Shown one piece after another: positions 7,149 to 45,200 of a stretch of DNA of 64,000 nucleotides (position 1 is its first letter; every line of letters starts with the position of its first letter). The translations under genes and the position numbers were made by a program. The notes under the pieces are model-generated. The model had not been told where the DNA came from. It saw only the letters and a program-made list of their open reading frames with translations, and did no database searches. This DNA comes from Takakia lepidozioides (lineage: Eukaryota > Plantae > Bryophyta), in assembly GCA_030704615.1 (NCBI GenBank), contig CM060731.1, positions 1,054,001 to 1,118,000 on the forward strand, in the 5' to 3' direction.

Positions 7149-7887
7149 AACGTTGTTACTCAAGAAATGTGTGGTGTCCGGAAACACAAACGCATGTTGC
7201 TGGTACTGAGTGTCAATGGCCTTCTTTGCTTACAGGCCACCTCCTACCGGAGACGAGTTGTTTAAACATAGGTTTTAATTGAGGAAAGTAACAATTCGGG
7301 TGCCCGCAAGACCATTTGTGGTTCCAAGACCTGGAGTGTTGGAGTTTCTTCGATTGGCATTGACTCATTTTCATGTAGCAATTTGGTCTTGCTCTGAGAG
7401 GGATACTGTATTCAAGATGTTGGAGTGTTTCGTTCCTCCGGAAATTATGAAACAATTTCGTTTCATATGGTCTGCTGAGCATTGCACAGATACAGCTGGA
7501 CATATTAAGCCTGGAATGAAATATCTTATTAAAGATATTAAGAATATTCTCGTAAAATTTAGTGGGAAAGAATTTGCTAGGCAGGGGAAAATTCTACTGG
7601 TCGACGATGACCCATCCAAGGCACTCCGAAACCCAGTGAATACTGGAGTCTTCCACATCACATTCAGGCAATCAAGCAATTTGGAGGATTTGGTTGACCT
7701 CACCAAAGCTTTGTGGCCTTTTCTCTCTAGCTTGATTGGAGCCCAGTCTGTTGTTGATTACGTCGGCAAGAACTCATGCAAATCTTCCGGCCCTCCGATA
7801 GATCGAAATCACGTCTACTGGTCCTGGTTTGGAAGATTTATTGATGCTTCTGTTTGGCACCCCCTCAAAAAGATCCCGATTATCTGG
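7149..7887 (+). pseudogene. FCP1/NIF-like HAD-superfamily domain 3 (one frameshift near 7265)
   Basis: KRMLLVLSVNGLL then PRPGVLEFLRLALTHFHVAIWS...FIWSAEHC...ILLVDDDPSKALRNPVNTGVF...LWPFL. Acceptor ends at 7148, donor at 7888. Confidence 0.8.
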
Positions 7888-10165
7888 GTACATAGTTTAA
7901 CATTGCCCTATTTTGTGTGTAGTCCATCAGCTTTACTTTAACCTCCATTTGTACTTGTACGTATGTTGACTTCACATGACTTTTATGAGATCAATGATAT
8001 TTCAATGATCTTTGTATTTTCTTTAACAATTCCCTTCTGTGCTGCCTCCACACAGTTACATTCCAGTGTCAAGTTCAGAATCAAATTCGACAGGAGAAGA
8101 AAGAGGAACGGCAGCGTAAGGCTGAGCGGAGGGACCGCGAGGCTTTACGTTTGTCAAGGTCATCAAGTACAGCTACCAGTGAGGTGTCTTGTCATATCTT
8201 ACATCAATCTCCCACTGTATCCATCTCCTCGGGTGTACAGAATTTCGCCATCAGTGGTAACCGACGGCGATCTCGAACATATGCGTTGAGTGTGAGCAAC
8301 TCTGTGTTATTGATGAATTAAACTATGGCCGGCCTGTTCATTACACACATACGTTATTTAACTCTGTCAATGTTATGCCAGACCATTTCGGCTGTAATGT
8401 TAGTTATCGAAGTTTGAGAGAAATCACGCGCGATCGCGCGTGGTTCCTTCATATACCCTCTTGTGGAGCTAGCATGGATCAGCAGTGCCATCAGATGTTA
8501 TCAAAACAAGTTGACTTCATTGTCAATTTAAGCAATAACAGATCAGGTTGGAGGCTGGAGGAGGCTGGAGGAGAAGAAATTTTCCGATGTTTTCATATTA
8601 CGATGGGGAACAAGTGACACGATCATCGTCTATGACTGAATTCGGGTTCCTATCTCGTAATTCAAGCTCCCACGATGGTCGTCTCATTTGTTCCTTAGCG
8701 GATTGTGAAGCTCTGTTAAAATCTCTCTTCAAATGGATTGAAATAATTTTGGTGGCTTCGAAATTCCTTCTCTGACGAACTGATGACACCATTGTGGTTG
8801 ATTGAAATCTGGATGCACTCGGCTCTTTGGGGTTCTCAATGGTGGTAGAGGCAAAGATCTGTCGCGCGATCACTCGTGGTTCGAAAAGCGGAATTCAACA
8901 TCGTCCTGGTTCTCCAGCCGACTGCCAAAGTGTTATATTACCTCAACAGTGCCACATGTGATTGGTCGGAGTGATGTTTTTTCTATGCTCACGCATTCAA
9001 CAACGAAAATGCTGTCATTTGAAGATGTGATGATTTTGCAGGCATAGTGAGTTACTTCAGGTCAGTTACAGCGAGAGAACTCAAGGTATTCGGATAATCC
9101 GTCCCGGAATATTTCACACCATCATCCTGGATGAATCATTGATATGTTTCAGAACACGCACTCAAATCATCCAGGCTGATGGTATCACTTGTTCCTTGGC
9201 GGATTGTTCAAGTATCTTATAATCCTAGTCTTTAAGTTGTTTGAAGTCATTCTCCCTGCTTGCATAATCCGATCTCCAACAATTGACAACATCATCGTGG
9301 TGTTTTATTTGGTTCCTATATCCTTCGTTTGGAGATCCATTATTCTTTTGAGGAACACCAACGATTAACATCGCACGATCACGCGTACTTTTCTAAGAGC
9401 TGACCTGTTCTGATGTCCATCATTGCACACCAAAATGGTGTTACGAGGAGGCAGAATGTCAGCAATTGAACGTCAATCTCCAGCGACATTCTCGTCGTTT
9501 TCATGTGGACTGGACGCCAAATGAGGAACAACGTCGCTAACAATCTGTGCAAACAATCTCAACAATCATATGTACTTCAAGGTGCTTGATACTGCATATG
9601 TTCATGTAGCTGATTTCTATAGGAGTCTTTTGCTATTCCCATTCCAATAACATCAGGTCCACTGAGACTGCCATATTCCGAAATCGGAATCAGGCACCAC
9701 CTATATGAAACCATAACCTAAGAATGAAATCTCTAGTTCATGCAATCACAGCCCGGAGAAATATCTCAAACTGCTGGCCAACTACTTGTGGGCTAGGGTG
9801 TTTCTTTGGAGTCGTATACAATGAATCAAAGATCTAGTTCTCAGCTGACATGTAGCTGATGATTTTATATTGGTCAATGATGGTGGGCCGTGGCTGATAC
9901 GGGAGTCTGAATATGACAGTCTCTGGGGACCTGATATTGTTCGCATGATAATAGTAAAACGACTACTATACAACCCGGTTATCAGCGTCACGTCCGTCCG
10001 TCAGCGTCAGGTCACGTCAGACCTGACGCTGACGGGACCTCTGTCACATTAGGTTCGAGGAATATTCTGGTAAAAATAGTAGCAGGTAAAATACTGCCAC
10101 TTAAGCAGCCACGTCGCCGACACAGTGGCGGTGACAAATACATTTTGAAAATGAACAAAATGAAC

Positions 10166-11175
10166 GCGACCGCCAATTATGGCGGTCACTTTGATTTTCG
10201 AAATTAAAAAAGAAATAGCGACCGCCGTATTGGCGGTCGCTTCAATTTTTTTGTTTTTAAAGCAAGATTGTTGACGGTCGCTTTATTTTTCGAAATAGAA
10301 AAAGAAATAGCGACCGTCATATTGGCGGTCGCTTCAATTTATTTTTAAAAAAAAAACAAGATTGGCGGTTGCACTCGCGGTCGCTTTATTTTTTGAATTA
10401 AAAAAACAAATAGCGACCGCTATCTTGGCGGTCGCTTCAATTTATTTAAAAAAAAGAACAAGATTGGCGGTTGCCTAATTTTATAAAAAAAACAAGCGAC
10501 TGCCGTATTGGCGGTCGCACAATTTTGTAAATATGTACAGAACAAGCGACCGCCATATGGCGGTCGGATAATTTCAAAAAAAAAAAAAAAAAAAAAAAAA
10601 AACAACGACCGCCATTAGGCGTTCGCTTAATTTAAAAAATATATAGAAAAACAAATGACCGCCATATGGCGGTCGGTAAATTTAAAATTATATTAAAAAA
10701 AACAAGCGACATATGAAAATAAAAGCGACCGCCACACCGGTGGTCGCTTGTTTTAAAACAATACAATATTTGTGACCACCAAACCGGCGGTCGCGTCAAT
10801 TTTATATATTAAGTTTAAGCGACCACCAGCCTGGAGGTCGCTTAAACTTGAAAATATAAAGAAAAAAGCGACCGCCTTACTGGCGGTCGCGTATTTTTAA
10901 AAATATTAAAAATAAAAGCGACCACCATATTGGCGGTCGCTTTATTTTAAATATATTAACAAATGAAGCGACCGCCATACCGGCAGTCGCATTATATTTT
11001 GAAATAAAAAATAATAACGACCGCCATACGGGCGGTCGCTTAAATTTAAAAATATACAAAATAGAAGTGACTGCAATATTACAGAAAATAAAAGGAAATA
11101 AAAGCGACCGCAGTAGTGGCGGTCGCTTGTTTTTCCTAAAAAATAAAAATAGCGACCGTAGTATTAGCGGTCGCT
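10166..11175. repeat. left subterminal palindrome array, ~20 units of GCGACCGCC-N3-7-GGCGGTCGC with A/T-rich spacers, ~50-bp period
   Basis: Units visible at 10218, 10309, 10412, 10495, 10545, 10724, 10818, 10867, 10917, 10967, 11017, 11103, 11151 and others. Confidence 0.9.
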
Positions 11176-11603
11176 TAATTTCAAAATTACAACAAATATG
11201 GTTGTACAGCCTTTTTCGGGTGGGCGCTATTGGTTCGTCATTTATTCATTTAACTTTCATTTAACTTTCATCCTTCTTGGATCATATATAAGGGAGGAGG
11301 GTCACCAAACTCATCACTTCCTTTAGCGCAAACACTTGAGGTTGCTTTGGATGTTCTCTTCCATTGAACGAGAGTGTAGCCCAAGAGGAGGGTGCGCACA
11401 TTTTGCCGTTGTGGCTTCCACCAAAGCCACTTCAGCAGATTGTGTATAAGCTCAACACTACAACCCACATCGACCCACTTGGGTTGCTAACAGGTGTAAA
11501 AGTGTTGGGCTATCGCATTGCACTCTACATTCACAACACGTTCATTTATAAGTGACTGTTTTTTGTTGCTTGCATCGCTAGGTCCGAGGAAAGTGGATAT
11601 TGG

Positions 11604-12202
11604 GTGAAAATGAGGGAGGAATGGAGCCCTTGGTATACGACAATCCCGAACACTGTCAGTGCCACTGATAGTGTTGAGTGCAACCTATGTGGATTAAAAT
11701 TTTCTTATCGTAAGGATCGGTTGCTCGCTCACCTCGGCTATAAATGTGCGAAGAGCGTTGGGGTGGGTTTATGCCCTAAAGCATCTATGCGGGTAAAAAG
11801 CCACTTTGCCCAGTGTGGAGGCAATATTCCAATGTCTTTGGATCTGGACATGACCTCTGAGCAGAACACTCAATTTTCCCGTCATGATGCCCCGATTAGT
11901 ACCCAGGGCGACTCTTGTGAGGCTTCGGGTGTCCTTGGACAAGTGGGTTGTACCGGAGCAACACCTGCTTCAACACCTCTTTGTACCCCTACACTTCAAC
12001 GGAGTAGAGGATTACGACATCAATCCATGCAGGAAGGTCTTAACTTGTCTGCGAAAAGACAGTTGGATAATAAATGGGCGCAGTTTTTCTTCGAGGCCAA
12101 CATACCATTTAATGTGGCAAGGCTTCCGGCATTTGTTTCTGCCGTTAGAGCAACCTCGGAGTCCAGATCCACGTACGTGCCTCTGACTTATCACAATCTC
12201 CG
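11604..12202 (+). pseudogene. hAT transposase N-terminal part (BED-type zinc finger and start of DUF659), truncated at an LTR junction
   Basis: CNLCGLKFSYRKDRLLAHL...C and KWAQFFFEANIPFNVA...YVPLTYHNLR. Upstream TATA-like tatataa at ~11286. Confidence 0.85.
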
Positions 12203-12801
12203 CCCCTTTTACTCCTCCACAAGACCCTCTCACAATTTGGGCCTAGTGGAAATTCCCTTGGTCGATGGCAGTCCGGAATAGCTCCTCAGACCTTGGTCGC
12301 TTTCCGGCTCGCACGCTTACTTACTAGTTTTTGGTCACCAACGGGCTTGCACCGTTCTCGGGGTTACTACTCCCTATATATACTTCTGTGACTGTCCGCG
12401 GGGGTTTCACAAACAACACCACCATTTTATGGCGAACCACCACGAAAACCCTCGATTCCCAGTGATGAGTCGCGGTGAGCCTTGGCCCACCCACCACGGT
12501 CCCCTTGGACCATGATGAGTCCCAAGACTCCCCACGACTCCCACCACAAGGTCTCCGCCCCCATGGTGAGTCCTATGCCACCCCCACTAAGTCCCACTAA
12601 GCTACCACCACCCCTCGTGGAACCACCCCCACCGCAACCCGATGTGTGGGGCTCCACCTAGTGAGCGCCTCCGCCTCCTTGAGTGCCTTGGGTACTCAAG
12701 GGTGCTTCAGCCCCCGCATCTATTGTTGTCACTGCCCCCACCACAGAGGCAGCCCCTCTCGTGTCCCGACCCCCCTGCCCTCAAGGCAAAGGGCCGCAAT
12801 A
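12203..12801 (-). repeat. 3' LTR of family A copy 1 (truncated)
   Basis: Near-identical to 18386-18982. Confidence 0.9.
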
Positions 12802-13705
12802 CACACCCCTACCAACAGGGAGTCGATGTCCTCATCGACTTGTCCATTTTGTAGAAACGAACATCCAAGTTGTGGCGTCCCACATCAAGGAGTTTGTTTC
12901 CGTACCATGGCGTCTCATGGCAAAGAACCAAACCCCTACTTGACTCTACTCTCCACTAGCTAGTTCGGCCGACTTCCTCCAAGTTCCGGCCAAGGGCGGA
13001 GCCTCTCAAGCTCCTCCCAGTGCACTCTTCTTGACCCACTTCAGGGCCAAGGAATGATCATGCTCGAGGATCGAATCGTCTTACTGCAACAACATTTGCT
13101 TGCGACCGCTCGTGATGTCGCTTTTGGCATCACCTTGAGCAAGGGTTCGTCTTGAACCCTTTTTGACTAGAAAGATAACCTTGAACCAACCGTGCACCCC
13201 AATCACTACAATTGGGTCCGCCTTGGAATGCTGGCCTGAGGTACGGGAACACGCCGAAGCCGCACTATGACTTCGTCCCGAGGCTACACGATTATAGTAC
13301 GTGAACGGAAGCACGCAGCTTCCGCGTTAGCCCGCACTACAAGGCAACCCCCTCAGTAGCGCAGTTATAGTACGCGCACACGCCAGATGCGCACTAGCAC
13401 GTGAACTCCCAACGAAGGTGCAAGTTTCATTGCCCCTTGGGTGGGAGTCACCCGATTTTGGCACTACACAAACACACGATTAAACCAATTTACCTCTCCC
13501 ACTTTGTAAGCTTAGCATGCATTCTACACACTAGCCAACCATACCATGCATCACCATTCCAAACAAAATAGGAACACACAATATTTGGAAACCATTTCAT
13601 TTATAACAAAATTCGTACAATACAAGTTTTTGCAATCGGATTCCTGAGCTAGCTAAGCCGGGCTAAGCATGCATTTCCTCCCCCACGCTCCGGTTGATGT
13701 CCCCA

Positions 13706-16700
13706 TCAACGCTTCTTCCGCTTTTGAGGTTGCCCTTCGAAAGCTGCAACCGCCTCGGATGCGTTCCCCATTTCTGAGGCACGCACCCAAGATGCCTCCA
13801 CATGATGATAGCCCTTCCATTTCACGAGATACTCCGTTTCTCGATTCTTGAACCTCCTCGATTTAAGCACTGCCTCCACCTCGTACTCAGGTTCATTTTC
13901 ATGATCCAACAGCACAGGTGGCGGACGCAACACTTGATGTCGATTCGGACGCGCTTCATCTTTGAAGTAAGGCTTCAAAAGGGAGACGTGGAATACAGGA
14001 TGCACCTTGCTGTTTGCCGGCAGCTCCAATTCATACACATCCTCATTCATAACCTTCCGGATGCGAAAGGGTCCCGTATACGGAGGTACAAACTTCGGAC
14101 TCACTTCCGGAGGTAGTCGAAAATTCTTGATGTTCAACCAGACCTCCGTGCCTGCCTCAAACTTAACCTCCCTCCGCTTCCGATTTGCCTACAGTTCATA
14201 CCGTTTCCTAGCTTTGGCAATATTGTACTTTGCGAGCTCCAACAAATGCTCGTGTTCTTCCAGCACTGCCGATGCTGCCGGTTCCTCAACGTCTTGGGCG
14301 GCCCAACTTGTCGGCACCAAAGGTGCTTTTCCATAGACCAATACGAAAGGGGAACTCCCGTTGCGGAATGTTTTGTGTTATTATAACAGAACTCTGCCGC
14401 ATCCAAGTGCTCCACCCAGTCTGATTGGTCTGCCGACACGTAATTCCGCAAGATCTGCTTCACCACGAAAATTCACCCTTTCCGTTTGGCCGTCTGTCGT
14501 AGGTTGGAAGGCGGTGCTCATTTTGAGCCTCGTCCCCATTTTCTTCCAAAGTGCCCTCCAAAACTTACTTGTAAACTTTGGATCGCGGTCCGAGACAATA
14601 TCCTTCAGGAGTCCATGATGCTTGAAGACGTGGGCGAAGTAAAGTCGCCCCGTTTTCTGCGCCGTTGCCGTCTCCTTGGTGGGGATGAAATGGCCCATTT
14701 TATTGAACCTATCCACCACCACCATGATTGCATCGAATCCTTTTGACAGCGGCATAACAGTCATGAAATCCATCGAGACACTTTCCTAAGACCCCTCTGG
14801 AATCGGCAAGGGTTGTAACAGCCCCGCTTGCTTTTTGTACTCGCTCCGGTTTTGTTGGCATGTGATGCATGTCTCGACATACTCCTCGGCCTCCTCCCTC
14901 AGTTTGGGCCAGAAATACTCTTTCTTCAAGAGTGCCGCGGTGCGCTTGGCTCCGTCGTGGCCCGCAAGCGGGCCATCATGGCATTCTCTTAAGATACTAT
15001 CTCTGATCCCTCCCTTCGGCACATAGAGACGCTTTTGCTTGTACCGGAGCAGTCCATTTTGCAAGTGGAACTGCGATTTAACCCCCATCCTCAAGTCCCG
15101 CATCACGGACTTCGCCATCTCATCCATTCAGTAAGCCTTCCGGATCTTCCTTTGGAGCGTCGTCTCCCCCCTGTACACCATCATGAGCTGCTGCTTTCTA
15201 CTTAAAGCATCGGCCACCACATTGTCTCGTCCCGATTTGTACTGGATATCCACGTCGAACAGTGCCAAAGTGTCTTGCCACCTAATTAGTTTTGGGGACA
15301 ACTTAGGCTGCGTGTCAAAATACTTCACCGTGACATTGTCCGTGAACACCTTCACCGGGTTGGAACCAATATAGTGGCGCCAAAGCTCAAGGCAATGCAC
15401 CACCGCCTTCATTTCTTTCTCGTGCGTTGGCCACCGCCGCTCCACTTCATTCAGTTTCTTACTTTCGTATGCCACTGGACGTCTACACCTCCAATTATGA
15501 AGTCCGACGCATCCGTATAAATCTCAAATGGGCGGTCGAACTCCGGGATTTTCAGGACTGGAGCTTCTGCCATCCGCTGCTTCAACTCGGCAAAAGCTTG
15601 GCCACAAAAGGTGTTCCATACCCAGACTTTGGATTTACACAAGAGGTCTGACAGCGGCCCCGCGATCTTGGCGAAATTTCTCACATACTTTCGGTAATAG
15701 GAGACAAGTCCTAAGAAGGATCGCACTCCTGGGACCGAAGTCGGAGACTCCCAGTCCAAGATTTCTCTCACATTTTTGTCATCCATTTTGATCCCATCCT
15801 GTGTAATCACATGCCCCAAGAACTCCACTTTTGTGACCCCGGATTCGCACTTTGAAGCTTTGGCATACAGCTTCCCTTCCCGTAATTTCTGGAACACCCT
15901 TTTGAGGTGCTCCAGGTGCTCTTCCTTTGTTTTCGAATACACCAAGATGTCGTCGATGTACACGATCACAAAGTCCTCCAACCACTCCTGAAAAAGGCTG
16001 TTCATTAGCGTGCTAAAGGTTGCGGGTGCGTTGGTGAGCCCAAAAGGCATCACCAAGAACTCAAAAGAACCATACCTTGTCCTGCACGCGGTTTTTTCCT
16101 CATCTCCTTCCGCCACTCGAATTTGATGATATCCGGAGCGCAAATCGATTCGGCTGAAATATTTCGCTCCTGCCAACCGATCGAAGAGGTCGTCGATCCT
16201 TGGCAAAGGGTATCGGTTTTTGATAGTCACCTTATTCAGAGCCCTGTAATTGACACACATCCGCAGCGTCCCATCCTTCTTGTCTGCGAATAGCACCGGG
16301 GTTCCGTAAGATGACTTACTCGGCCGGATGTACCCCTTTGACATTAGATCCTTGAGCTGAGTCTTCAGCTCGACCAACTCTCTGTGGCTCAACCGGTAGG
16401 GTGCCTTGGCAGGCGGCTCCAATCCCGGTATCACCTCAATCTTGTGGTCAACTCCTCTTCATCACATCCTGATATTTCTCCAAAATCCCCTTGATCCAAT
16501 CTGGGCTCGGCTTCCCATCGCCTTTTCCCTTCACTTGTCTTACGTAAAGCAAAAACTGGGGCTTGAGTGGCTCCTCCACAGCCCACTCCTTTGCTGATAG
16601 CACGTTTATTCGTCGTCCCACTGGGTTGGGCGCTTCCGAAACTCGTAAAACTTCACCACCATTCCCACACGGTAGCGTGACTGTTCTCTTGCGGCCATCT

Positions 16701-18225
16701 ATGACCGCTCCAGATTTGCTCAAAAAGGTCATCCCCAAAATTAGATCCACTCCATCGATCTCGCAAATGGTGAAGTTCTCACGTCCATCCCAACTCCCGA
16801 GCTGAAGAGGAACATCGAACGCCAACCTCGTTGCCAATTGTGGTTCTCTTTTAGCAGAACGCACCTCAATAGAAGCCCCCACATCACTTGTTGGGAGTCC
16901 CAGCTTCCGTGCCGTTGCCGGGGTGTCATGAAGGAGTGCGACGCTCCTGTGTCCACCAACAACGATACGTTAGTTCCGGAAATTATCCCACTCACGAACA
17001 ATAACTGACTCCCTTTACGCAGGGTGCGAGTCTCCTAATACAACTCACAAGAGTAGTTGTCTACCTTGCAAGTCTTGGCAACCACTGCCTCCACCAAGCG
17101 GCTACTGGAATCCTCGGATAACTCCATGGGTGCCCGCGTCATATTCAATTGTCAGGGTTTCGCGCACTTCTTTGCCATGTGCCCGGGTTCCCTGCAATTA
17201 AAGCACACTCCATCGAAGGTTGCCTTCTGTCCACCATAAGCCGCCGCACTTGGTTTCCCTTTCGGGGCACCAGGTATCGTCTTGACGTGTGAGGGCCCTC
17301 CCTTCGATTTCCATGTGCCATTGTCACCGTGTGGCCTATCCCACTTCTTTTCCGGTCGGAAGGAGTCACCTTCCCGCCAGACCTTCTTGTGGTTCAGCTC
17401 CGTACGGCCTTGTCTTTCGCCCCTAGGGACATCCGAGAAACATTCAGCCCTTTCAATTGCCTCATTCAAAGTCTTAGGTGGCTTCTCCTCCAACTTCCGT
17501 CTGGCCCATGGGACCAGTCCCGCCACAAAGTTGAAGACCATTTCTGGTTATGCCATGTCTGCGACTTCGAGCAACAGCACATTGAAAGCCTGGACATACC
17601 CCCGAATGTCATCCGTTTGCTTCAAATTCCTCATCTTGTCTCGGGCGAGCCAGGACGCGTTGAGGGGCACAAACTGTCTCTTCATGAGTTCCTTGAACCC
17701 ACTCCAGTTCAAGGTCTCTGGGTTTGGACCTCGGTCGTGAAGGCATTTCTGCCACCATTGTTGAGCATAGCCCCTCAAATAGGTGGGAGCCACTTCCACC
17801 CGATCCTCGTCACTCAACTTGGCCGCCCGGAAGTACTGCTCTAGCTCCAAGAGCCAAGTGTTGAGTGCCTTCCGATTTCGGACGCCCTCGAAGGTGCCGG
17901 GTTCCTTAGGCTTTACCTTAAGCTTTGCCTTAGTGGAAGTGGCATTAGCCGCCTTCAACACGTCTTTCAACGTCCCACCAAACTGCGCCAACAACCCTTC
18001 CCAAAAGGCTGCTGGCATGGGAGGCATCTGTTGGTCTGTCGGAGCTCTCATGGATTCCTCGGGCTCCTACTCCTCAGATTCCTCCCGTTCTTGAGCGGCC
18101 TCGCTTCCAAAGGCATGCATCGCTTCCTCAAATGGCCGCTTCGGTGACACGTTGCCCCCATCGGGCTCACCAGGATCATCATCTTTCGGGCCGTTCCGCT
18201 TTCGCTTTGGCTTGCCCGACCCCAT
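13706..18225 (-). pseudogene. gag-pol with C-terminal chromodomain, multiple stops, frameshifts and small deletions
   Basis: [14 protein letters not shown] knuckle, LVDTGAS protease, YIDD RT, RNase H TDAS, integrase H-H-C-C and VSDRD, chromodomain YEVEAVL...EYLVKWKGY...SW. Confidence 0.93.
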
Positions 18226-18266
18226 GATGAGGCCGATCCCAAGGACGATCGCGTACTGGATTCTAA

Positions 18267-18278
18267 GCTCTGATACCA
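18267..18278 (-). promoter_or_regulatory. primer binding site, tRNA-iMet
   Basis: TGGTATCAGAGC on the minus strand, 2 nt after the LTR end. Confidence 0.9.
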
Positions 18279-18280
18279 AG

Positions 18281-18982
18281 TGTCGCGCACCTCACTTTGG
18301 TAAGCTCCCCTTCAAGTCATAGTTACTCGCCAAACTGGCCGCCGGGCCAACTCGGAGCTTCGGCTGCTCACCGGGGCATAACGGTCCCCTTTTACTCCTC
18401 CACAAGACCCTCTCACAATTTGGGCCTAGTGGAAATTCCCTTTGGTCGATGGCAGTCCGGAATAGCTCCTCAGACCTTGGTCGCTTTCCGGTTCACACGC
18501 TTACTCACTAGTTTTTGGTCACCAACGGGCTTGCACCGTTCTCGGGGTTACTACTCCATATATATACTTCTGTGACTGTCCGCGGGGGTTTCACAAATAA
18601 CACCACCATTTTATGGCGAACCACCACGAAAACCCTCAATTCTCGGTGATGAGTCGCGGTGAGTCTTGGCCCACCCACCACGGTCCCCTTGGACCGTGAT
18701 GAGCCCAAGACTCCCCACGACTCCCACCACAAGGTCTCCGCCCCCATGGTGAGTCCTATGCCACCCCCACTAAGTCCCACTAAGCTACCACCACCCCTCG
18801 TGGAACCACCCCCACCGCAACCCGGTGTGTGGGGCTCCACCTAGTGAGCGCCTCCGCCTCCTTGAGTGCCTTGGGCACTCGAGGGTGCTTCAGCCCCCGC
18901 ATCTATTGTTGTCACTGCCCCCACCGCAGGCAGCCCCTCTCGTGTCCCGACCCCCTTGCCCTCAAGGCAAAGGGCCGCGACA
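18281..18982 (-). repeat. 5' LTR of family A copy 1
   Basis: TGTCGCGGCCC...GTGCGCGACA on the minus strand, with inverted ends TGTCGCG/CGCGACA. Confidence 0.92.
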
Positions 18983-19400
18983 CTCATTTTGCCACTAACT
19001 TCTTGATGGTGGATCGGTTGGTGACGGTGAAGACCAGTCTGGAGCACACCATCATCGATCCTCAATGGGATACGTACACACGGACATTGCGGGACTCCAG
19101 AAAAGCCAAGTCATTGGGCAAAAGTCGAAAAGTTCGAAATAACATTCGCAGCGATGATTTCTGGAAGAAATGTGAGAATTTTGTTTATATGGTAGAGCCG
19201 GTGTTAATCGTCTTGTGGGAGTTTGATGGAAAGCAACTAGTAATAGGCATGACATGGTTACTAATGCAAAATCTTGAGAAGCACGTCCAATCCTTGAGGC
19301 ATCCTCCCTTCTCCTTAGAACCTGAACTTGCAGACAGTGTTGAGGATGCATTTTACGACCGTCGTTCGATGGTTCGAACGGACTTGCATTATGCAGGGGC
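18983..19400 (+). pseudogene. hAT transposase middle fragment
   Basis: THFATNFLMVDRL (TRFAT motif)...SDDFWKKCE...[13 protein letters not shown]...[14 protein letters not shown]; cut off by family A copy 2 sequence. Confidence 0.85.
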
Positions 19401-22321
19401 ACCTTCACTGGGTTGGAACCAACATAGTGGCGCCAAAGCTCAAGACAGTGCACCACCGCCTTCATCTCTTTTTCGTGCGTCGGCCACCGTCGCTCCACTT
19501 CATTCAGTTTCTTACTTTCGTAAGCCACTGGACGTTCATCTTGTATAAGTACACCCCCAATCGCGAAGTCCGACGCATCTGTATGAATCTCAAATGGACG
19601 ATCGAACTCCCGGATTTTCAAGACTGGAGCTTCCGCCATCCGCTGCTTCAATTCAGCAAAAGCTTGGCCACAAAATGTGTTCCATACCCAGACTTTGGAT
19701 TTACACAGAAGGTCCGACAGCGGCCCCGCGATCTTGGCGATTTTTCTCACATACTTCCGGTAATAGGAGGCGAGTCCTAGGAAGGATCGCACTCCCGGGA
19801 CCGAAGTCGGAGGCTCCCAGTCCAAGATCGCCCTCACCTTTCTGTCATCCATTTTGATCCCATCCTGTGTAATCACATGCCCCAAGAACTCCACTTTCGT
19901 GACCCCGAATTCGCATTTTGAAGCTTTGGCGTACAGCTTCCTTTCCCGCAACTTTTGGAACACCCTTTTGAGGTGCTCCAGGTGTTCCTCCTTTGTTTTC
20001 GAGTACACCAAGATGTCGTCGATGTACACGATCACAAAGTCATCCAACCACTCCTGAAAAAGGCTGTTCATCAGCGTGCTAAAGGTCGCCGGTGCATTAG
20101 TGAGCCCAAAAGGCATCGCCAAGAACTCATATGAACCATACCTTGTCTTGCACGCGGTCTTCTCCTCATCTCCTTCCGCCACCCGAATTTGATGATAGCC
20201 GGAGCGCAAGTCGATCCGGCTGAAATACTTCGCTTCTGCCAACCGGTCGAAAATGTCGTCAATCCTTGGCAAAGGGTACCGGTTTTTAATAGTCATCTTA
20301 TTCAAAGCCCTGTAATCGACACACATCCGCAGCGTCCCATCATTCTTGTCTGCGAATAGCATCAGGGCTCCGTAAGGTGACTTACTCGGCCGGATGTACC
20401 CTTTTGACATTAGATCCTTGAGCTGAGTCTTCAGCTCGACCAACTCCCTGTGGCTCAACCGGTAGGGTGCCTTGGCAGGCGGTTCCGATCCCGGTATCAC
20501 CTCAATCTTGTGGTCAACTCCTCTTCGCGGTGGCAGGCCGCTTGGTAAATCCTCCGGCATCACATCCTGGTATTTCTCCAAGATCCCCTTGATCCAATCT
20601 GGGCTCGGCTCCCCATCGCCTTCTCCCTTCACTTCTCTAATGTAAAGCAAAAACTGGGGCTCGTGTGCCTCCTCCACGGCCCACTCCCTTGCTGACAGAA
20701 GGTTTATTCGCCCTCCCATGGATTTGGGCGTTTCCGACACTCGTAAAACCTTGCCACCATTCCCAAATGGCAGCGTGACCACTCTCTTGCGGCCATCTAT
20801 GACCGCTCCGGATTTGCTCAAAAAGGTCATCCCCAAAATGAGATCCACTCCATCGATCTCGCAGATGGTGAAGTTCTCACGTCCCTCCCAACTCCCCAGT
20901 TGAAGAGGAACATCAAACGCCAACCTTGTCACCAACTGTGGTTCTCCTTTGGCAGAACGCACCTCAATAGAGGCCCCCACGTCACTTGTCGGGAGTCCCA
21001 ACTTTCGCGCCGCTGCCGGTGTCATGAAGGAGTGCGACGCTCCTGTGTCCACCAACAACGACACATTAGTTCCGGATATTATCCCATCCACGAACAATAA
21101 CTGACTCCCTTTACGCAGGGCGCCAGTTTCCTGATACAACTCACAAGAATAGTTGCCTACCTTGCAAGTCCTGGCGACCACCGCTTCCACCAAGCGACTG
21201 ATGGTATCTTCCGACAGCTCCGTGGTTGCTCGAGTCATGTTCAATTGTCGAGGTTTTGTGCACTTCTTGGCCATGTGCCCGGGCTCCCCGCAATTGAAAC
21301 ACACTCCATCAAAGGTCGCCTTCTGTCCGCCATAAGTTGCTCCACCCGCTTTTCCTTTCGAAGCACCGGGTGCCGCATTGACGTGTGAAGGCCCTCCCTT
21401 CGATTTCCACGTGCCATTGTCGCCGCGTGGCCTATCCCACTTCTTTTCCGGTCGGAAGGAGTCACCTTCCCGCCGGGTCTTCTTGTGGTTCAGCTCCGTA
21501 CGGCCTTGTCTCTCACCCCTAGGGACATCCGAGAAACATTCAGCCCTCTCAATTGCCTCGTTCAAAGTCTTGGGTGGCTTCTCCTCCAACTTCCGCCTGG
21601 CCCATGCGGCCAGTCCCGCCACAAAGTTGAAGACCATTTCTGGTTCTGCCATGTCCGCGACTTCGAGCAACAGCACATTGAAAGCCTGGACATACCCCCG
21701 AATGTCATCTGTTTGCTTCAAATTCCTCATCTTGTCCCGGGCAAGCGAGGACGCGTTGAGGGACACAAACTGTCTCTTCATCAATTCCTTGAACCCACTC
21801 CAGTTCAAGGTTTCCGGGCTTGGGCCTCGGTCGTGAAGGCGTTTTTGCCACCATTGTTGAGCATAGCCCCTCAAATAGGTGGGAGCCACTTCCACCCGAT
21901 CCTCGTCACTCAACTTGGCCGCCCGGAAGTACTGCTCTAGCTCCAGGAGCCAGGTGTTGAGTGCCTTCCGATTTCGGACGCCCTCGAAGGTGTCGGGTTC
22001 CTTAGGCTTCACCTTAAGCTTTGCCGTAGTGGAAGTGGCATTAGCCGCCTTCAACACGTCTTTCAACGTCCCGCCAAACTGCGCCAACAACCCTTCCCAA
22101 AAGGCTGCCGGCATGGGAGGCATCTCTTGGTTTGTCAGAGCTCTCAAGGATTCCTCGGGCTCCGACTCCTCGGATTCCTCCCGCTCTTGAGGGGCCTCGT
22201 TTTCAGAAACATGCATCGCTTCCTCAAACGGCTGCCTCGGTGACACGTCGCCCCCATCGGGCTCACCAGGATCATCATCTTTTGGGCCATTCCGCTTTCG
22301 CTTCGGCTTGCCCGACCCCAT
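19401..22321 (-). CDS. Gag-Pol polyprotein (gag, zinc knuckle, protease, RT, partial RNase H), single frame, truncated
   Basis: Part of ORF 19052..22489. First ATG after the PBS gives [10 protein letters not shown]. Motifs [30 protein letters not shown]. Confidence 0.9.
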
Positions 22322-22376
22322 GATGAGGCCAATCCCAAAGACGATCACGTACTGAACTCTAAGCTCTGATACCAAG

Positions 22377-23101
22377 TGTCGCGCACCTCCCTTCGGTAAG
22401 CTCCCCTTCACGTCATAGTTACTCGCTTTGATGCGCGCGCCTGACTCCCAACCTGGCCGCCGGGCCAACTTGGAGCTTCGGCTGCTCACCGGGACTTAAC
22501 GGTCCCCCTTCGCTTCCCACTAAACCCTCCACCTATTTGGGACTAGTGGAATTCCCTTTGGTAGATGGCAGTCCGGAACAGCTCCCCACTCTTTGGTCGC
22601 TTTCCGGCTCGCTCGCTTACTCACTAGTTTTTGGTCACCAACGGGCTTGCACCGTTCTCGGGGTTACTACTCCCTATATATACTTCTGTAGCTGTCCGCG
22701 GGGGTTTCACAACCAGCCATGCCATTTTATGGCGAACCACCACGAAAACCCTCGACTCCCGGTGATGAGTCGTGGTGAGTCTTGGCCCACTCACCACGGC
22801 CCCTATGGACCGTGATGAGTCCCAAGACTCCCCACGACTCCCACCACGAGGTCTCCGCCCCCATGGTGAGTCCTATGCCACCCCCACTAAGTCCCGCTAA
22901 GCTACCACCACCCCTTGTGGAGCCACCCCCACTGCAACCCGGTGTGCGGGGCTCCACCTAGTGAGCGTCTCCGCCTCCTTGAGTGCCTTGGGCACTCAAG
23001 GGTGCTTCAGCCCCCCATACCTATCGCTGCCGCTGCCCCCACCACAGGGGCAGCCCCTCATGTGTCCCGACCCCCTGCCCTCAAGGCAAAGGGCCGCGAC
23101 A
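22377..23101 (-). repeat. 5' LTR of family A copy 2
   Basis: Homologous to 18281-18982; followed by the iMet PBS. Confidence 0.92.
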
Positions 23102-23374
23102 CTTAGCCCCCGCCAAAGCGTTTGTCATTTTCCTCTCCATATTTTGCTGAAAAATCTGAAACCCCTCCCATCCACGCCTGACATAAGCACTCTCCAACCT
23201 CATCATGTCCCTACCCTTGAAATAATCCACTACCATTTTTTTCACCATATCCAAGGCATCCGGACCCGGGTGGTCTAGCTTGTTGACCTGGCTATCCCGC
23301 TCGTGGGCACGTTTTCTCTTCCTCCGCCCCCCAGACGACCCCGCCCCAGAACTTGAATTCACAACCCCCGACAT
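23102..23374 (-). pseudogene. unknown accessory ORF in the hAT right arm, convergent with the transposase and truncated by LTR insertion
   Basis: MSGVVNSSSGAGSSGGRRKRKR...VNKLDHPG...NALAGAK, then LTR. 32/60 identical (ungapped) to the ORF at 51754-52245. Confidence 0.75.
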
Positions 23375-23696
23375 TGTATAAATTTTTGCCCACTACAGGG
23401 TCCAAAACCTCAGAAAACGGCAATGAACGCGTGTGGATGGTGTCTTCGTAGTTTTCTGCAAAAAAACAGTCCGCCAGAGATCCGAAAACGGCAAAACAGT
23501 GATACGATGATTGAACTGTGAACAAGTGTGTGGGACTGACCAATAGAAAACCGACAAAACCTCCCCCCCCCCCCAAATAATCACCTTTGCACTTCCCATT
23601 GGCAGTGCCAAGCAACGAAGTCAGAAAGGACTACAGGATGCCAAAGAACCGCACCACGAAATGGGCAAAAGTAGTCAGAGAAGGAGGGGGGAATGG

Positions 23697-23704
23697 TTTA
23701 TATA
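23697..23704 (-). promoter_or_regulatory. TATA box candidate for the accessory ORF
   Basis: TATATAAA in GC-rich context (gcgccTATATAAAcc), between the right array and the ORF. Confidence 0.5.
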
Positions 23705-23957
23705 GGCGCCCACCAGCCCCCCCCAAAAAAAAATGGCATTATGCTTGAAAAGGCGCGACTAGCCAGTCGCACCTCGCCACGCGCACCCACATGGGAGAGG
23801 TCAAGGGTTCAAAACCACCTCCCCCCATCCCATTTGTTTCGTTTTTCCTGACCCGTGGCACCTCGCCACGTGGCTGGCTAGACGCCGCTTCATGATTAAA
23901 AAATTAAAACAAAACGCCACACGGCGGGTCCCTGGATTTTTAAGAAAACAAAAAACA

Positions 23958-24593
23958 TGCGACCGCCGCATGGCGGTCGCTATATTTATAAAAACAAAAA
24001 GAGCGACCGCCACATGGCGGTCGCTGTGTTTTTTTTTAATATATTAAATAAGCGACCGCCTACTGGCGGTCGCTTAATTCAAGATTCAAAATATAAATAA
24101 GCGACCGCCGTTAAATGGCGGTCGCTTCATTTTTAAAAATATATTAAGTAAGCGACTGCCAAATGGTGGTCGCTGTATTTTTCAAAAATTAACTGAAGAA
24201 GCGACCGCCAAACGGCAGTCGCTTTATTTAAGAATAAAAATAAAAATAAACGGCCGCTGCTAAATGGCGGTCGCTAAATTTTAAAAATATATATAGCGAC
24301 CGCCACATGGCGGTCGCTGTATTTTTATAGAATATATCAATGATATAATAATAATAATATAATAAAGTGCGAGCGACCACCAATCTGGGCGGTCACTTCA
24401 TTTAAAACATAATAAATTTCAACCGACCGCCAATGTAGGCGGTCGCTTCATTTATAAATAAATAAATTACCGGCGACCGCCAATATAGGCAGTCGTTTAA
24501 TTTAACAAAATATTAAATTACAAGCGACCGCCAATATGGGCGGTAGTTTTTATTTTAAACTAATAAATTATATGCGACCGCCAATATAGGGTG
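23958..24593. repeat. right subterminal palindrome array, ~13 units of GCGACCGCC-N3-7-GGCGGTCGC, ~50-bp period
   Basis: Units at ~23958, 24002, 24051, 24100, 24151, 24200, 24250, 24295, 24372, 24423, 24472, 24523 and 24574. Confidence 0.9.
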
Positions 24594-25888
24594 GACACAT
24601 TTTTTTAAATGAATTAATAAATATTAATAATTGGCCACGTCTGTCTTACACCGTGGCTGTCATGTCATTACAAATGGTAGAAGTAAATCGTAAAAGTCAA
24701 ATGTAAAAAAATTTACATTGTAAACGTCCGGATTCGACGTGACGTGATGTGACGTGACGGCCGATGTGTCAGCGCCACATCACGTCAAGAATGATAACTA
24801 GGCTATACAATTCAGCTACAGGAACAACAATAGCATCAAACACCTAGCAGTAAATAGGATTTGTTACATTGCTTGTGACAGCTCCAATCAGTTAGTTGGT
24901 GGTTAGTCAGTTGGAGATTATTTAGTTGGTGATCAGTTTACGAGTGCTTTACAGTAAATCGTCAGAAGCACCACAGCCCGTCACAGATGAAAAAACGTCA
25001 TTTTCTCCATCAACGTACTCGCCACCGAGCCACTCTCCATAAACATACGAGCAGCATACTTACTCCCCAACTGGATACTTTCAGCATCTTACTCCAGGGT
25101 CAGTTATTTGGACATTATGTTTTGAAGAGCATACGAGTAATTCGTGATCTTCGCGATTCACTGAAAGTCTGCAAGACCACCAATTCTTCGAGAAGTACAG
25201 CTGAACTTCGGTCGCACAAGACATTGTTGGTTGGCGTAATATTGGAGGATATTTTTTGTGAGGTCATCACCATATCAACGATTCTCGAGACAACATTTCA
25301 ATGACTTCTTTCATCTTCTGCTGACGAAAACCTTCATAACAACGGAAGAATACAAATTTGAAAATGGTCCCTCCAACCTTGTCAAAATATCGTGATTTTG
25401 GGAAATGACTTTCCTCAAACTATTTTCATCATAAGTACGTCGGCCGACATCGTCTTGTGCTATCGGAGTTCAGCCCTCCTTCTAGAAGTTAATACTCTCA
25501 TTGACATGGTTTACGTTACTTGTATTGGTCTATGCCGCATGAGGCGAGACTTACTCAAATTGACATGGTTCTGAAATAAAACCTAGTTGTCTATCATCAA
25601 TGTCTCCCCATTGTCTTTCATTTCATTTCATGGTATTATGTCATTGTGCCATGTTTTGCTCACATATTTGATTGATTTGTCTTGTACGTTACATAGTAAC
25701 GGCCTTCGTAAGCTCAGTCGCGGTTACGAATATGACTGGCGCTCCAATCATCCATCAGGCCGCGGATCATGAAGCGAGTTATCTCCCGACACCCATTTTT
25801 TTAATTTATTTTTTAATGTAATGGAAACACTTGGGAGCGACAGCTCGCAAATCAGGCCCCCTTAATAGTATAACCTCTTTCACAGTAA

Positions 25889-35697: not shown

Positions 35698-36756
35698 TGT
35701 TAGAGGACTGTCTGGGACTTAGACACTTATACGGGATCTGTAGGGTACCCTTAATTTTTGCACAGACTGAGACCAACAGGAGCCTTAGGGGTGACAGCAG
35801 CGCACTGTAGAGGGGGTTTACACAGCCCGTCACAGCCAACACAGCCCGTCACAGTCGTCACAGCCGACACAGCCAACACAGCCCGTCACAGCCGTCACAG
35901 TCGTCACAGCCGACACAGCCAGACACAGTCAGCACAGCTCGTCACAGCCTGACACAGCCATCACAGCCAACACAGCCCGTCACAGCCGACACAGCCACAC
36001 AGCCAGTCACAGCCCGTCACAGCCCGACACAGCCAAACACAGTCGCACAGCCAATCACAGCCCGTCACAGTTTCACACAGCCAGTCACAGCTTGACACAG
36101 CTGTCACGATCATAGGGAACGGAGAGCAGGACAGGGAACGACTGTGGGGAACAACACCTGCAAATGGAACATGTTAGTTCACGGACGACGGTTAGTGAGG
36201 GAAACGGTTAGAGCCACGGGTAGGAAGATAAAGGGAGAAGCAAGGATTGAGTAGGGGGCTTTTTGGGGGATGATTCTTGGAAGCACGTCAGGAGAGAGAG
36301 AGGATCGGGCGGAGAGTAAGAACGGAAGCAAAGATGGAGAGCACGGTGAAGGAGGAGAGATGATTAGTAGATGCTTGTTATATGCAAAACTGTAGTGATA
36401 TTGTAGAGCAGATTAGAGACACAATGGCTTCGGCCTGATACCTGATAAATCATAATCTGATACTTATACGATACAACCACACTGTGTAGAGAGATCTGAG
36501 TGAAGCTGTGGAATGAATGGATGGGTTGATGGAATCCGATAAATTGATGAAGCAAACTGATACTTAATTATCAATGGTAAGGTAGCTAACATGAATGCCA
36601 AAAGGGAAACAAAGAGGAAACACCCCCATGATACACTAGCTGTAGGTCATGACTGATTGTTCTGCGCGGGCTGAGTACTTAGAGATTTCCAACTCTTCTA
36701 TCTTGGAGTTTCCGCCTCGAATAGCGAAGGGATGGGTGAGTAAAAGCCGCGCAACA
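35698..36756 (+). repeat. family B LTR containing a CACAGCC-rich ~10-bp minisatellite (~35818-36108)
   Basis: Homologous to 42262-42944 and 62292-63274. Confidence 0.88.
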
Positions 36757-40300: not shown

Positions 40301-40410
40301 GGATACACGAGATACAAATTACCACAAGAAATCTAGTAAGAATTACCTGCTACAAGAAGACCTCGAGGAGTCAGAGAGTATGACTGGAAAGGAGGACTGG
40401 ATGAGGTCAT
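37366..40410 (+). pseudogene. gag-protease of family B copy 1, frameshifted
   Basis: MSDEREARR start, FPIYSGKGDPDVHISQFEHMC capsid, knuckles CAKCQNEGHTTTEC, CTICKMDNHSIENC and CYYCNQPGHRRAAC, then protease. Confidence 0.85.
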
Positions 40411-40689
40411 GAAACACTGCTCCTTGCCTTGATGCTAGCAGCTGACAATAATACCCTAGAATTGTTCCAGCAAACACCCCAACCCTACTTATCGTACTAG
40501 TTTTTACTTGTGTCTGCGTCCAACAGGCATTCACATTTTTGCCTGGATTGTTCCACCATTGATTGGTTCGGAAACGTATTCATTCCAGAGCTTCTCCACA
40601 TCTCTATTATCTGTTTTTCGATACTTTCCTGTCGACCACATTGGCAGTAACATGTCAAAATCACTCCAACACCACCATAGATCCACCAA

Positions 40690-42125
40690 CGAGGTAACTT
40701 GCAGAACATTTGGTACAATTCCAGCTTTGATGATATCCCCATGCACCTCTTTGCCCTTCTCCAGGGCGTCTGCCAGGCTTGCAAGCATTGCCAATGCACA
40801 CAAACATGATGTGCTTCCCCCATCATTTGCTCATAGGTCTCCAAAGCCTCCATCCCACATCCCTGCTGTGCATACCCTACAACCATCGCACTCCACGACA
40901 CCACATCTCGTTCAGCCATAGTGTCGAACACTCCCTTTGCATCCTAGATGCACCCACATTTTGCAAACATGTTCACCAGGGTTTTGTTCAGAATGACATC
41001 TGGTACAATTCCAGCTCTGAAGATGTCGCCATGCACCTCTTTCCCCTTTTCCAAAGCTGCTAGGGCAGTGTTCAGATTGACATTTGGCACAATTTCAGCT
41101 TTGATGATATCCCCATGCACCTCTTGCCCTTCTCCAGGGCTGTCAGGCTTTCACAAGCATTGCAAATGCACACAAACATGATGTGCTTCCCCCATCATTT
41201 GCTCATAAGTCTCCAAAGCCTCCATCCCACGTCCCTGCCGTGCATACCTTGCAAGCATCGCACTCACGATACCACATCCTCGTTCAGCCATAGTGTCGAA
41301 CGCTCCTTCATCCTAGATGCACCCACATTTTACAAACATGTCACCAGGGTATTGTTCAGATGACATCTATCTGGTACAATTCCAGCTCTGAAGATGTCGC
41401 CATGTACCTCTTTCCCCTTTTCCAGAGCTGCCAGGGCAGTGTTCATAATGACATTTGGCACAATTCCACCTTTGATGATATCCCCATGCACCTCTTTGCC
41501 ATTGTCCAGGGCTCAATGCACCCACATTTTGCATACATGTCCACCAGGGTATGGTTCATAATGACATTTTGTACAATTCCAGCTCTGAAGATGTCGCCAT
41601 GGACCTCTTTCCCCTTTTCCAAGAGCTGCCAGGGCAGTGTTTAGAATGACATTTGGTACAATTCCAGCTTTGATGATATCCCCATGCACCTCTTTTGCCC
41701 TTGTCTAGGGCTGCCACGCTTGCACAGCATTGTAAATGCACACAAACATGATATGGCCGGGCTTCACCCCTTCCCCCATCATTTGATCATAGGTATCCAA
41801 AGCCTCCATCCCACGTCCGTGTTGTGCATACCCTGCCCGCATCGCACTCCACAACACCACATCTCGTTCAAGCCATAGTGTCGAAAACTCCCTTTGCATC
41901 CTCAATGCATCCACATTTTGTATACATGTCCAGGTCAGAGCAGTGTTCAGAATGACATCTGGTGCAATTCCAGCTTTGACCGATGTCACCATGGACCTCT
42001 TCCCCTTTTCCAGGCTTGCACACGTATTGCAAACCCAAACAAACGTGATGTGGTTGGGCTTCACCCCTTCGCGCATCATTTGCTCACAGGTCTCCAAAGC
42101 ATTCGTACCACACCCATGCTTGGTA
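40690..42125 (-). pseudogene. PLS-class PPR pseudogene (tandem motif array with many indels)
   Basis: Repeated EKGKEVHGDIIKAGIVPNV, MFDTMAERDVVSWSAM and GMEALETYEQMMGE motifs. Confidence 0.85.
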
Positions 42126-42261
42126 ATCCTGCCAACATTATATTCCACGTGATCAAAGATCGTTGAGGATTTCTGTGTTGAACACTTGGTGATCATCCAT
42201 GATGCTCCCGTCACGGCGCCGCCACGTCAGCTTCCACATCGTCGTCCACGTCTGCGTCCAT

Positions 42262-45200
42262 TGTTAGAGGGTTGTCTGGGAATTAGACATTTTTACAGGT
42301 TCTGTGGGGTACCCTTAAGTTTGCGCAAACTTACGGATAGTAGACTTAGACCCATATAGGCCTTGGGGTGGGTAGACAGGGCTTACACAGTCAGTCACAG
42401 CCTTACACGGTTAGGCAGAGCTTGACACAGCTTGTCACAGTCTGACACAGCCTTATACAGCTTGTCACAGTCTGACACAGCCTTACACAGCCTATCACAG
42501 CCTATCACAGTCTATCACAGCCTGACACAGCCCGCCACAGTCCGACACAGCCAGTCACAGCCTGACACAGTTTGGCACAACCCATCACAGCATTCACAGG
42601 GAACGACTATTGTGGAACGACATCTGCAGAGGGAACGTGCATACTGTCTTGAATGACAGTTAATTAGTTAGGCGGTTAGAAGAGCTTGCAAGTAGAATAG
42701 GCAGAGTAGCAACAGAGGGGGATACTTCTTGGATCATGACTTGGTCATCCGGGAGGAAAGGACGATCTGGAGCGGAGGGATGGAGAGCGCAGTGGAGTAG
42801 GAGACCTGATCTGTTGATGCTTGATGAATGCAAGCTGTAGAGTTGAACTGTAGAGCAGAATAGAGACACCATGGCTTCGGCCTGATACTTGATAGATATT
42901 AATCTGATACATATTTCATACTCACACTGTGTAGAGAGACCTGGGATTCTTTCAGAGGTTCTTGGAATTGCCAGACGGTTGCAAAGAAAACATTCTTAAG
43001 AGAGTGCATGATGCTGATCCTGAGTGGGGTCTGGAGAAAGGAGTGATAAAGATTTATCAGGTGGCCTATAGAGGGAGAGCAAGTTGGTTACCAACACTGG
43101 TTTCTGTGGTAGCATTGTTATCCATTAAACGAGTGGAGTTTGAAAGCTGGGAGGAACGGAAGGTGAATGTTTACACTCACATGCATGAAGAACTTGTACT
43201 GGTAAAGAATTGGATTCCTAAGGATATCCTGTGGATCAAACTTACACCAAGAACAACTTTTTAGACGTGCTTGCCATATGGTTATATGGTAATGGAGTCT
43301 TCTAGTATAGCCAAGGGTGCATTAAAGCTTGAAAGAAATCCAGGCATATACGAGAGATACTACAGAAGAGAGTTTTGGTTATTGCCTCATTAAATATATG
43401 AAAGACATGGGACATGAGTGATGAAAGAGAAGCTAGACTCCACAGATATTCAGCAAAAAGAGAAAGTTATTTGAAAACTTGCTAATCATCCATATCTTTG
43501 GGAGAGAGGAATAGACATAGGGGAATCATCTGGACCTCTCACACCATTAAGACAGAGAGTCAACATCACCCATACCGGAAGAATCAGAGTTGGATGCCAC
43601 TCCTTCTTATTCTTTACAGGAAAGATTAAGGGATTTGGCACAGGAAGAAGATCAGCCACGAGGGGAAAGATCTGAGGTCCTTGGATTAAGATTTGACAGA
43701 AATCTTTGATCAGAGTTGGCATGGAACACCAAAAGCAGGAACTCCAGTTTTTGAAGCACAGGACAAAGAAGGAGAGGATGATGTAGCAGAGCCAACGGAG
43801 AGTTCAGACTCTCCAACATCACTGCAGTTGAGTTATATGAGTGAGGAAGAAGAAATCCAAGAGAAGAACTTGGAAGATGAAACAGAGAGAGAATTTGGAA
43901 GATGAAGAGTATGAAGAGGTAGACCCAACAGTTGAGGTTGAGACTACAACCAGGACATCCAACCTGTTGGACCTGGATCAAGTGGAGCACTTGGATCATA
44001 GGCCAACAAAGGTGTCGGCTCAGGGGGATCAGGCGGGCAGCTTGGATCTGGCTCTGGGGGGACAGGGAGTGTGGAAAGTAGTGCAATTGTAGCTGGGGAT
44101 ACTGTAAGTACAGAGGGGCTTGTAGCAGGAAGTGCTCAGGGGCCAACACCTGTTGGGAGTTCCACCACTACAACAACAATTCCTCAAGGACCAGCACCAA
44201 CAGGAGGACCAACACCTGTCAGTGGGCAGGGTGTAGGGCCACAGATGGCGGTACCTCCAACACGGGAAAAACCACCTTTTCCCATATATGCAGGGAAAGG
44301 GGATCCTGATGTACACATCAGCCAATTTGAGCACATGTGTATTGTGAACAATGAGAATGGCGATGATGCCAAGATGAGACCGTTTCCTTGTTCACTTATC
44401 AAGAAAGCAAGTGAATGGTATGCAAGGTTTTCTAATAATCATTTCCTAACCTGGAATGGCCTTAGTACAACATTCTGAAACAAGTTCAGGACAAGCAAAA
44501 TTGAGGATGAAGTGTATGGGAGTTTACAAAAGTTAAGGCAAAAGAAGCATGAAACTGTTGAAGAATATATGGAAAAAATGGAGTTAATGATCAAAAAGTT
44601 GGCTGCTGTACCAGCACCAGGATTACAGAAGACCTGGTTTGTGAGTGGACTAAGACTTGAATTACAAAAGAAAGTGGATATGCTCCATAATAACAGTGGA
44701 AGAGGCATTCGAAACAACCAACAAAATTGAGCAATTGGGAATGCTCAGGAGGTATAAGAGGGATGATGAGGACTCTGAAGATGAGTCAGATGAGGAAGAA
44801 GAGCAAGAGCTCAAGAGGAAGAGTAAGAAGAAGGAAAAGTTGAAGAGGGATAACTATGAGAAAAGACTGGAAGAAATAGAGGCTGCAACACATTGGAGAA
44901 AGGGTGTTTGGTGTGCAAAATGCCAGAATGAAGACCATACCACAGCTGAATGCCACATGAAGGAGAAACATTGTACTATCTGTAAAATGGATAACCATTC
45001 TAATAGAATTGTTATTACAACAGAAGACAGCTGCAAGAGAACCTAGGCAAGTGAGGGTGCATCAATGCAGCCCCAGCCCAAAAAACAATGATCAGGACCA
45101 CTATGATAGGCCTGGTGGATATAACAATGGTATGCAGGAAATCCAGGGGAATTACCAAGGCAATCCCAGAGCAACTATCATGGTATCCAAGGGGGAATTA

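Follow-up and report, generated by a model that had tools for sequence, protein, structure and literature searches.

Canonical hAT transposons are a few kilobases long and carry one gene, and they are the textbook case of single-gene transposons. The stretch of moss DNA analysed here (64 kb from Takakia lepidozioides, referred to as the window) contains a hAT element whose right arm holds an open reading frame, ORF-A, that points toward the transposase. A sequence-only reading had taken it for the second gene of a two-gene hAT, and the locus raises the question of whether ORF-A belongs to the element as a gene and what it encodes. The evidence supports an accessory gene that is real, old, and under selection inside a hAT bounded by target-site duplications (TSDs) and TIRs.

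Ends, arrays, and interior of the element

The hAT occupies positions 9974-24802 (14,829 bp). It is flanked by 8-bp TSDs, CTATACAA, identical at 8/8 positions (9966-9973 and 24803-24810, plus strand), and the plus strand of the window has just these two copies of the octamer. Adjoining the TSDs are 11-bp TIRs (9974-9984, plus strand; 24792-24802, minus strand) that agree at 9 of 11 positions, and the TSD/TIR-bounded element of the first reading was thus recovered as described. The first bases of the TIRs are CC, in contrast to the usual CAG or TAG. Assignment to the hAT superfamily follows from the 8-bp TSD, the short TIRs, the DUF659-type relatives of the transposase, and the presence of subterminal repeats in both arms.

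These repeats form palindrome arrays built from the same unit, GCGACCGCC-n-GGCGGTCGC, in the left arm (10168-11180, about 50-nt period) and the right arm (23950-24600, spacing mostly about 50 nt). A strict pattern counts 13 units on the left and 11 on the right (23961-24545), where the arrays called by TRF extend to about 24590. From outside to inside, both arms read palindrome array, TATA box, about 320 nt, and start codon, so that two promoters face inward, each behind one shared palindrome unit, with the transposase on the left and ORF-A on the right. A role of the palindromes as RNA hairpins was considered and found to be unsupported, since there are no compensatory changes among the units; sites acting in DNA fit better.

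Much of what lies between the arms is foreign. Sequence derived from the hAT amounts to 4,346 of the 14,829 bp, and two gypsy copies and two deletions occupy the middle. The transposase gene starts behind a TATA box at 11285-11291 (plus strand) and survives as two plus-strand pieces. The 5' part, with a Zn-finger-like region, is cut by the first gypsy copy (11604-12203; E~1e-22 by tblastn against loci with a DUF659 transposase), and the middle part is ended by a deletion junction (18982-19400). Compared with DUF659 transposases of public metagenome contigs, the two pieces are about 30% and 45-50% identical, respectively. A Pfam search of the pieces themselves gave no match; their relatives carry PF04937, and the relatives' genes run on into PF05699 (dimerisation). 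This copy has lost the catalytic regions and is most likely a dead remnant, left by deletion, of a hAT with several genes. Because of the deleted interior, the gene number of the intact element cannot be read from it, and the original description as a two-gene hAT is not supported; as detailed below, related elements also carry a RING-H2 gene.

The first gypsy retrotransposon (12203-18983, minus strand) has LTRs that are 96.8% identical, one of them truncated by a deletion that took transposase sequence too. The second (19400-23101, minus strand) is a partial copy of the same family, and its LTR truncates ORF-A. A third insertion of this family cuts another copy of the accessory gene, on Logan contig L001 (474-1962), at a different site 174 nt further downstream in the same gene. 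The orientation is identical in all three, and such repeated same-orientation insertions hint at a target preference.

Elsewhere in the window we found two FCP1/NIF-like HAD phosphatase domains (4915-5607 and 7279-7938; Pfam E values of 7e-8 and 8e-11) and decayed PPR gene fragments, some of them in tandem (2000-3200, 40400-42200, 48200-48500, and 50200-50450). Dispersed arrays of CACAGCC-type 10-mers are found in several unrelated-looking repeats (35700-36100, 42260-42600, 47930-48020, and 62290-62620).

The accessory gene and its relatives

ORF-A is a 5' stump. Its ATG lies at 23374 and the gypsy LTR ends it at 23101, leaving the first 91 codons of the gene (23102-23374, minus strand), which encode a Ser/Gly linker, a basic NLS-like patch (GGRRKRKR), and the start of a predicted helical domain. 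It is preceded by a leader of 322 nt (23375-23696, minus strand), probably containing a 5'-UTR intron, by the TATA box TATATAAA (23697-23704, minus strand, read 23704-23697), and by two (CA)CGTGGCGAGG promoter motifs (23772-23872, minus strand), a 12-mer shared with contig L002 (see below) and absent elsewhere in the window. The minus-strand order of array, TATA box, leader, and ORF is therefore as it had first been read. In three homologs (leaders at 23375-23696 and 51330-51753 of the window and at 85-378 of L002), a donor-like site occurs about 50 nt past the TATA box and acceptor-like sites precede the ATG, and on the strength of these splice-like sites a 5'-UTR intron is probably conserved in the gene family.

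A search of 1.84 billion representatives with ORF-A returned just two proteins, P0001 (the product of L001) and P0002 (encoded on L002), and no host-gene homolog; word-index searches, which cover proteins between 0.55 and 1.75 times as long as the query, returned the same two alone. No single-copy host gene was among these homologs, and neither Pfam nor the representative library gave a match to a described accessory family of transposable elements. Searches of Pfam, NCBIfam, and PDB with ORF-A and P0002 produced no match, no relative of P0002 turned up in metagenome or viral scans, and tblastn against plasmids and phages gave only noise matches. L001 holds a second copy with 93% DNA identity to ORF-A. 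The source of L002, SRR15431198, is a Takakia lepidozioides metagenome (PMC9021317), and all four ORF-A homologs probably come from one genus, Takakia.

The fourth relative, homolog B (51754-52245, plus strand), lies in the window itself and covers the whole N-terminal domain of about 165 aa, with frameshifts near 51810 and 52035. By tblastn it matches ORF-A at 41/79 positions (E=1e-20), with the next-best other match in the window at E=0.68. The ungapped match of 32/60 aa first noticed was essentially right: the block is 33/63, or 30/60 counted from its start. Over these 63 codons, dN/dS (Nei-Gojobori) is 0.28 between ORF-A and homolog B, 0.33 between ORF-A and L002, and 0.41 between L002 and homolog B, with dS of 0.85-1.27, values that are rough given some 36 synonymous sites. 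Between ORF-A and L001 it is 0.31 over 89 codons. Purifying selection on the accessory protein is indicated by every diverged pair, with ratios of about 0.3 and not about 1, and the supposed age of the gene is borne out by a dS near 1 and at least four diverged copies.

These results bear on the possibility that the ORF is a piece of a host gene picked up by passive capture, Pack-type cargo that does nothing for the element. Such capture is common among plant DNA transposons (PMC6446971, PMC13317346), and the G-box/ABRE-like words of the promoter, together with the likely leader intron, look host-like. However, we consider this origin very unlikely, since no host ortholog was found in the representative library or the word-index searches, selection has acted between copies standing behind transposon arrays, and three diverged copies have an undamaged start of the ORF downstream of its own promoter.

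The layout around homolog B had been described as the same as that of ORF-A. The order of array (50654-51250), TATA box (51323-51329, plus strand), and leader is indeed common to both loci. The array at locus B is built from another unit, however (GGACC(A/G)CC...GCGGTCC, about 102-nt period), and neither a TIR/TSD pair nor a transposase was detected at locus B. Two kilobases downstream of homolog B, on the same strand, is the broken 5' end of a coiled-coil/RING-H2 accessory gene, gene D (54426-54761; 36% identity over 100 aa, E=2e-12, to contig L018). On JGI contigs, several independent copies show a gene of this type, of 1,000+ aa, upstream of a DUF659 transposase. Since the RING-H2 gene is linked to hATs elsewhere, locus B is probably the remnant of a related multi-gene hAT, which lends indirect backing to the claim of an accessory gene belonging to these elements.

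Several other features were seen at this locus. Gene D has a basic patch of its own (KSGRKRG) and meets gene C head-on near 54770. Gene C (55299-54770, minus strand) is a broken ORF of about 175 aa with one internal stop, a likely leader intron, and no Pfam match; a paralogy of genes C and D was rejected as not significant (E=0.13-0.16). An isolated imperfect palindrome of 40 bp lies between genes B and D (52807-52846), and a repeated VATKPA-like stretch with several stops, possibly a decayed ORF, at 53100-53400 (minus strand).

The accessory gene had been proposed to be family-wide, and this could not be upheld. None of 25 hAT loci from other samples (L003-L027) gave a match to ORF-A or to the kinase part described below, and no hAT ends were found around the copy at 51.7 kb. 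The 25 loci are partial plant-like contigs, and many of them are repeat assemblies of a few copies. In some, 8-10 kb of sequence flanks the transposase on one side; the transposases are about 48% identical to that of the window. The transposase is present in them, the RING-H2 gene often so. Past its dimerisation region the transposase of these loci continues into a long C-terminal extension, acidic and of low complexity.

Related hATs lacking the accessory gene, and a locus B with neither TIR/TSD nor transposase nearby, would be expected if array, promoter, and gene formed a mobile cassette exchanged among transposon backbones, with the hAT one of several contexts. We regard this as quite improbable, because locus B is 2 kb upstream of the hAT-linked RING-H2 5' end in the same orientation, and because in the hAT at 9974-24802 the arrays ahead of the transposase and of ORF-A are made of one palindrome unit. 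Our preferred reading remains that of an accessory gene belonging to the hAT.

A candidate kinase beyond the N-terminal domain

What the complete gene may have encoded is suggested by P0002, the longest relative, which is about 60% identical to ORF-A over the ORF and is encoded on the 1.3-kb contig L002. After a basic patch like that of ORF-A it has a helical domain of about 170 aa and then a kinase-like N-lobe, a continuation at odds with the small accessory protein of unknown type first envisaged; ORF-A is most likely not a small stand-alone protein. The landmarks of this region are GGYG at 256-259 (G-loop), LAGK at 278 (with Lys281), Glu298, HHFGII at 305, and WWNGG at 326-330, and their spacing is the canonical one of an N-lobe.

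With hhalign, an N-lobe profile built from 82 distinct, unrelated kinases on plasmid and viral contigs aligned to residues 254-337 of P0002 over 79 columns (E=0.005, score 20.8) with all landmarks in register, compared with 12.0 +/- 1.9 and a maximum of 19.3 for 150 shuffled controls. A profile of 8 kinases gave E=0.017. The HMMER kinase match was weak, 131 of 5000 shuffles scoring as high, and a regular expression for the N-lobe, met by 0 of 20000 shuffles, has little weight since the pattern was drawn up after the sequence had been seen. Atlas feature neighbours are mostly kinase clusters, at 0.84-0.89, below the 0.9 mark, and serve as leads only. Single-sequence AlphaFold models, with pLDDT of 38 and 41, make fold searches meaningless; the N-terminal domain is predicted to be helical. 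P0002 ends at a stop short of the catalytic loop, and no recovered sequence reaches HxD...N, DFG, or APE.

In ORF-A itself the N-lobe motifs are absent owing to the gypsy truncation, and no recovered copy combines both hAT ends with the kinase part. The link between the two is found in their promoters. ORF-A and L002 have in common promoter words of 12, 10, and 9 nt (CACGTGGCGAGG, AGGTGCGAC, and GTGCGGTTCT), the first of which occurs nowhere else in the window, and L002 has the palindrome arms GCGACCGC...GGCGGTCGC immediately before its TATA box. Protein identities are similar among the relatives (65/109 for P0001-P0002, 63/109 for P0001-B, and 59/109 for P0002-B) and so do not decide whether ORF-A groups with P0002 or with homolog B, but the shared promoter words, and the different array unit of locus B, group it with L002. 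We therefore found moderate support for a C-terminal part of P0002 that would be a kinase and that ORF-A would once have had, and consider it likely that ORF-A is the cut-off N-terminus of an atypical protein kinase.

Homolog B provides the main counterpoint, as its N-terminal domain is followed by no significant kinase match. A G-loop/AAK-like stretch downstream of it was rejected because it did not beat shuffles. Homolog B may either be deleted for the kinase or represent a kinase-less form. In the latter case ORF-A might be a stand-alone protein of about 200 aa, an NLS plus a helical array binder that counters silencing in the manner of VANC or TnpA, with the kinase fusion of P0002 a separate subfamily. 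The helical prediction for the domain (pLDDT 38-41) would suit such a binder, but no DNA-binding fold or family was found for it (Pfam, representative library, and the poor models), and the subterminal arrays of hATs such as Ac and Tam3 are normally sites of the transposase. Array units do differ between loci A and B, as the targets of VANC do among families (PMC5735166). However, homolog B may simply be deleted, and the promoter words tie ORF-A to the kinase-bearing contig and not to homolog B. We thus judge the stand-alone binder improbable and retain the truncated kinase as the preferred reading.

Proposed function and comparison with known systems

The full accessory product would comprise a basic NLS, the helical domain of about 170 aa, and an atypical Hanks-type protein kinase, and its gene would be transcribed inward from its own TATA promoter behind the palindrome array that it shares with the transposase promoter. 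In hATs, subterminal repeats are normally the binding sites of the transposase, as in Ac and Tam3. Transposases can also activate their own elements (preprint, 10.64898/2026.08.24.746577). Taken together, these two properties suggest as the simplest model that transposase bound to the palindrome arrays would co-activate both genes. The accessory protein may then enter the nucleus through the NLS-like patch, aimed by the helical domain. Substrates of the kinase may be host silencing factors, chromatin proteins, or the transposase, and phosphorylation might prime them for the RING-H2 ligase of the element.

Our best guess is that the accessory product would be a nuclear helper against host silencing. 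That it is more specifically a nuclear kinase, switched on together with the transposase by way of the arrays they share, and aiding the element by phosphorylation, seems possible rather than probable. The broader proposal, that hATs of an early-diverging moss lineage encode a signalling module, is speculative and, as we see it, rather unlikely. In such a module an atypical kinase of the nucleus, equipped with a new targeting domain, and a RING-H2 ligase, both behind palindrome-array promoters, would jointly modify or destroy host silencing proteins, a counter-defence by enzymes that would set it apart from the DNA-binding systems of VANC and TnpA. The hAT family offers testable handles: a new domain of about 170 aa, a palindrome of defined sequence, and a candidate pair of kinase and ligase for assays in Physcomitrium. 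The value of the ORF-A stump is that it ties the N-terminal domain to true hAT ends. In the open literature we found no hAT reported to carry a kinase gene or a comparable second gene, subscription journals and Repbase being outside the scope of the search.

The element resembles canonical hATs (Ac, Tam3, and hobo) in its 8-bp TSD, short imperfect TIRs, subterminal arrays, and DUF659/dimerisation-type transposase. It differs from them in TIRs that start with CC and in a second gene that points inward and has a promoter of its own, and relatives further carry a RING-H2 gene. The presence of extra genes within a DNA transposon recalls Pack-MULE-type capture and Starship cargo; in contrast to these, the accessory gene retains a complete 5' end and exists in several copies, which show purifying selection, and no host parent was detected for it. 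With Hanks-type kinases P0002 would share the G-loop, beta-3 Lys, alpha-C Glu, and hinge, which the profile alignment places in register, but it is very diverged, with no Pfam match, and is fused to an unrecognised N-terminal domain.

Accessory genes are established in MuDR, VANDAL, and Spm (PMC6446971, PMC5735166), and the closest parallels are VANC of VANDAL, mudrB of MuDR, and TnpA of Spm, all cases of a DNA transposon with a selected accessory gene (PMC5735166, PMC6446971, bioRxiv 10.64898/2026.08.24.746577). The convergent layout resembles that of mudrB, and tandem arrays that differ between families are a further shared feature. The moss gene belongs to a different superfamily, however, and shows no detected sequence family match to VANC, TnpA, or mudrB; its product is seemingly an enzyme, a kinase, and in this it departs from VANC and TnpA, which are regulators that bind DNA. 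If this reading is true, a kinase-type gene kept under selection extends accessory-gene strategies to the hAT superfamily, and an enzyme joins the known DNA-binding accessory regulators.
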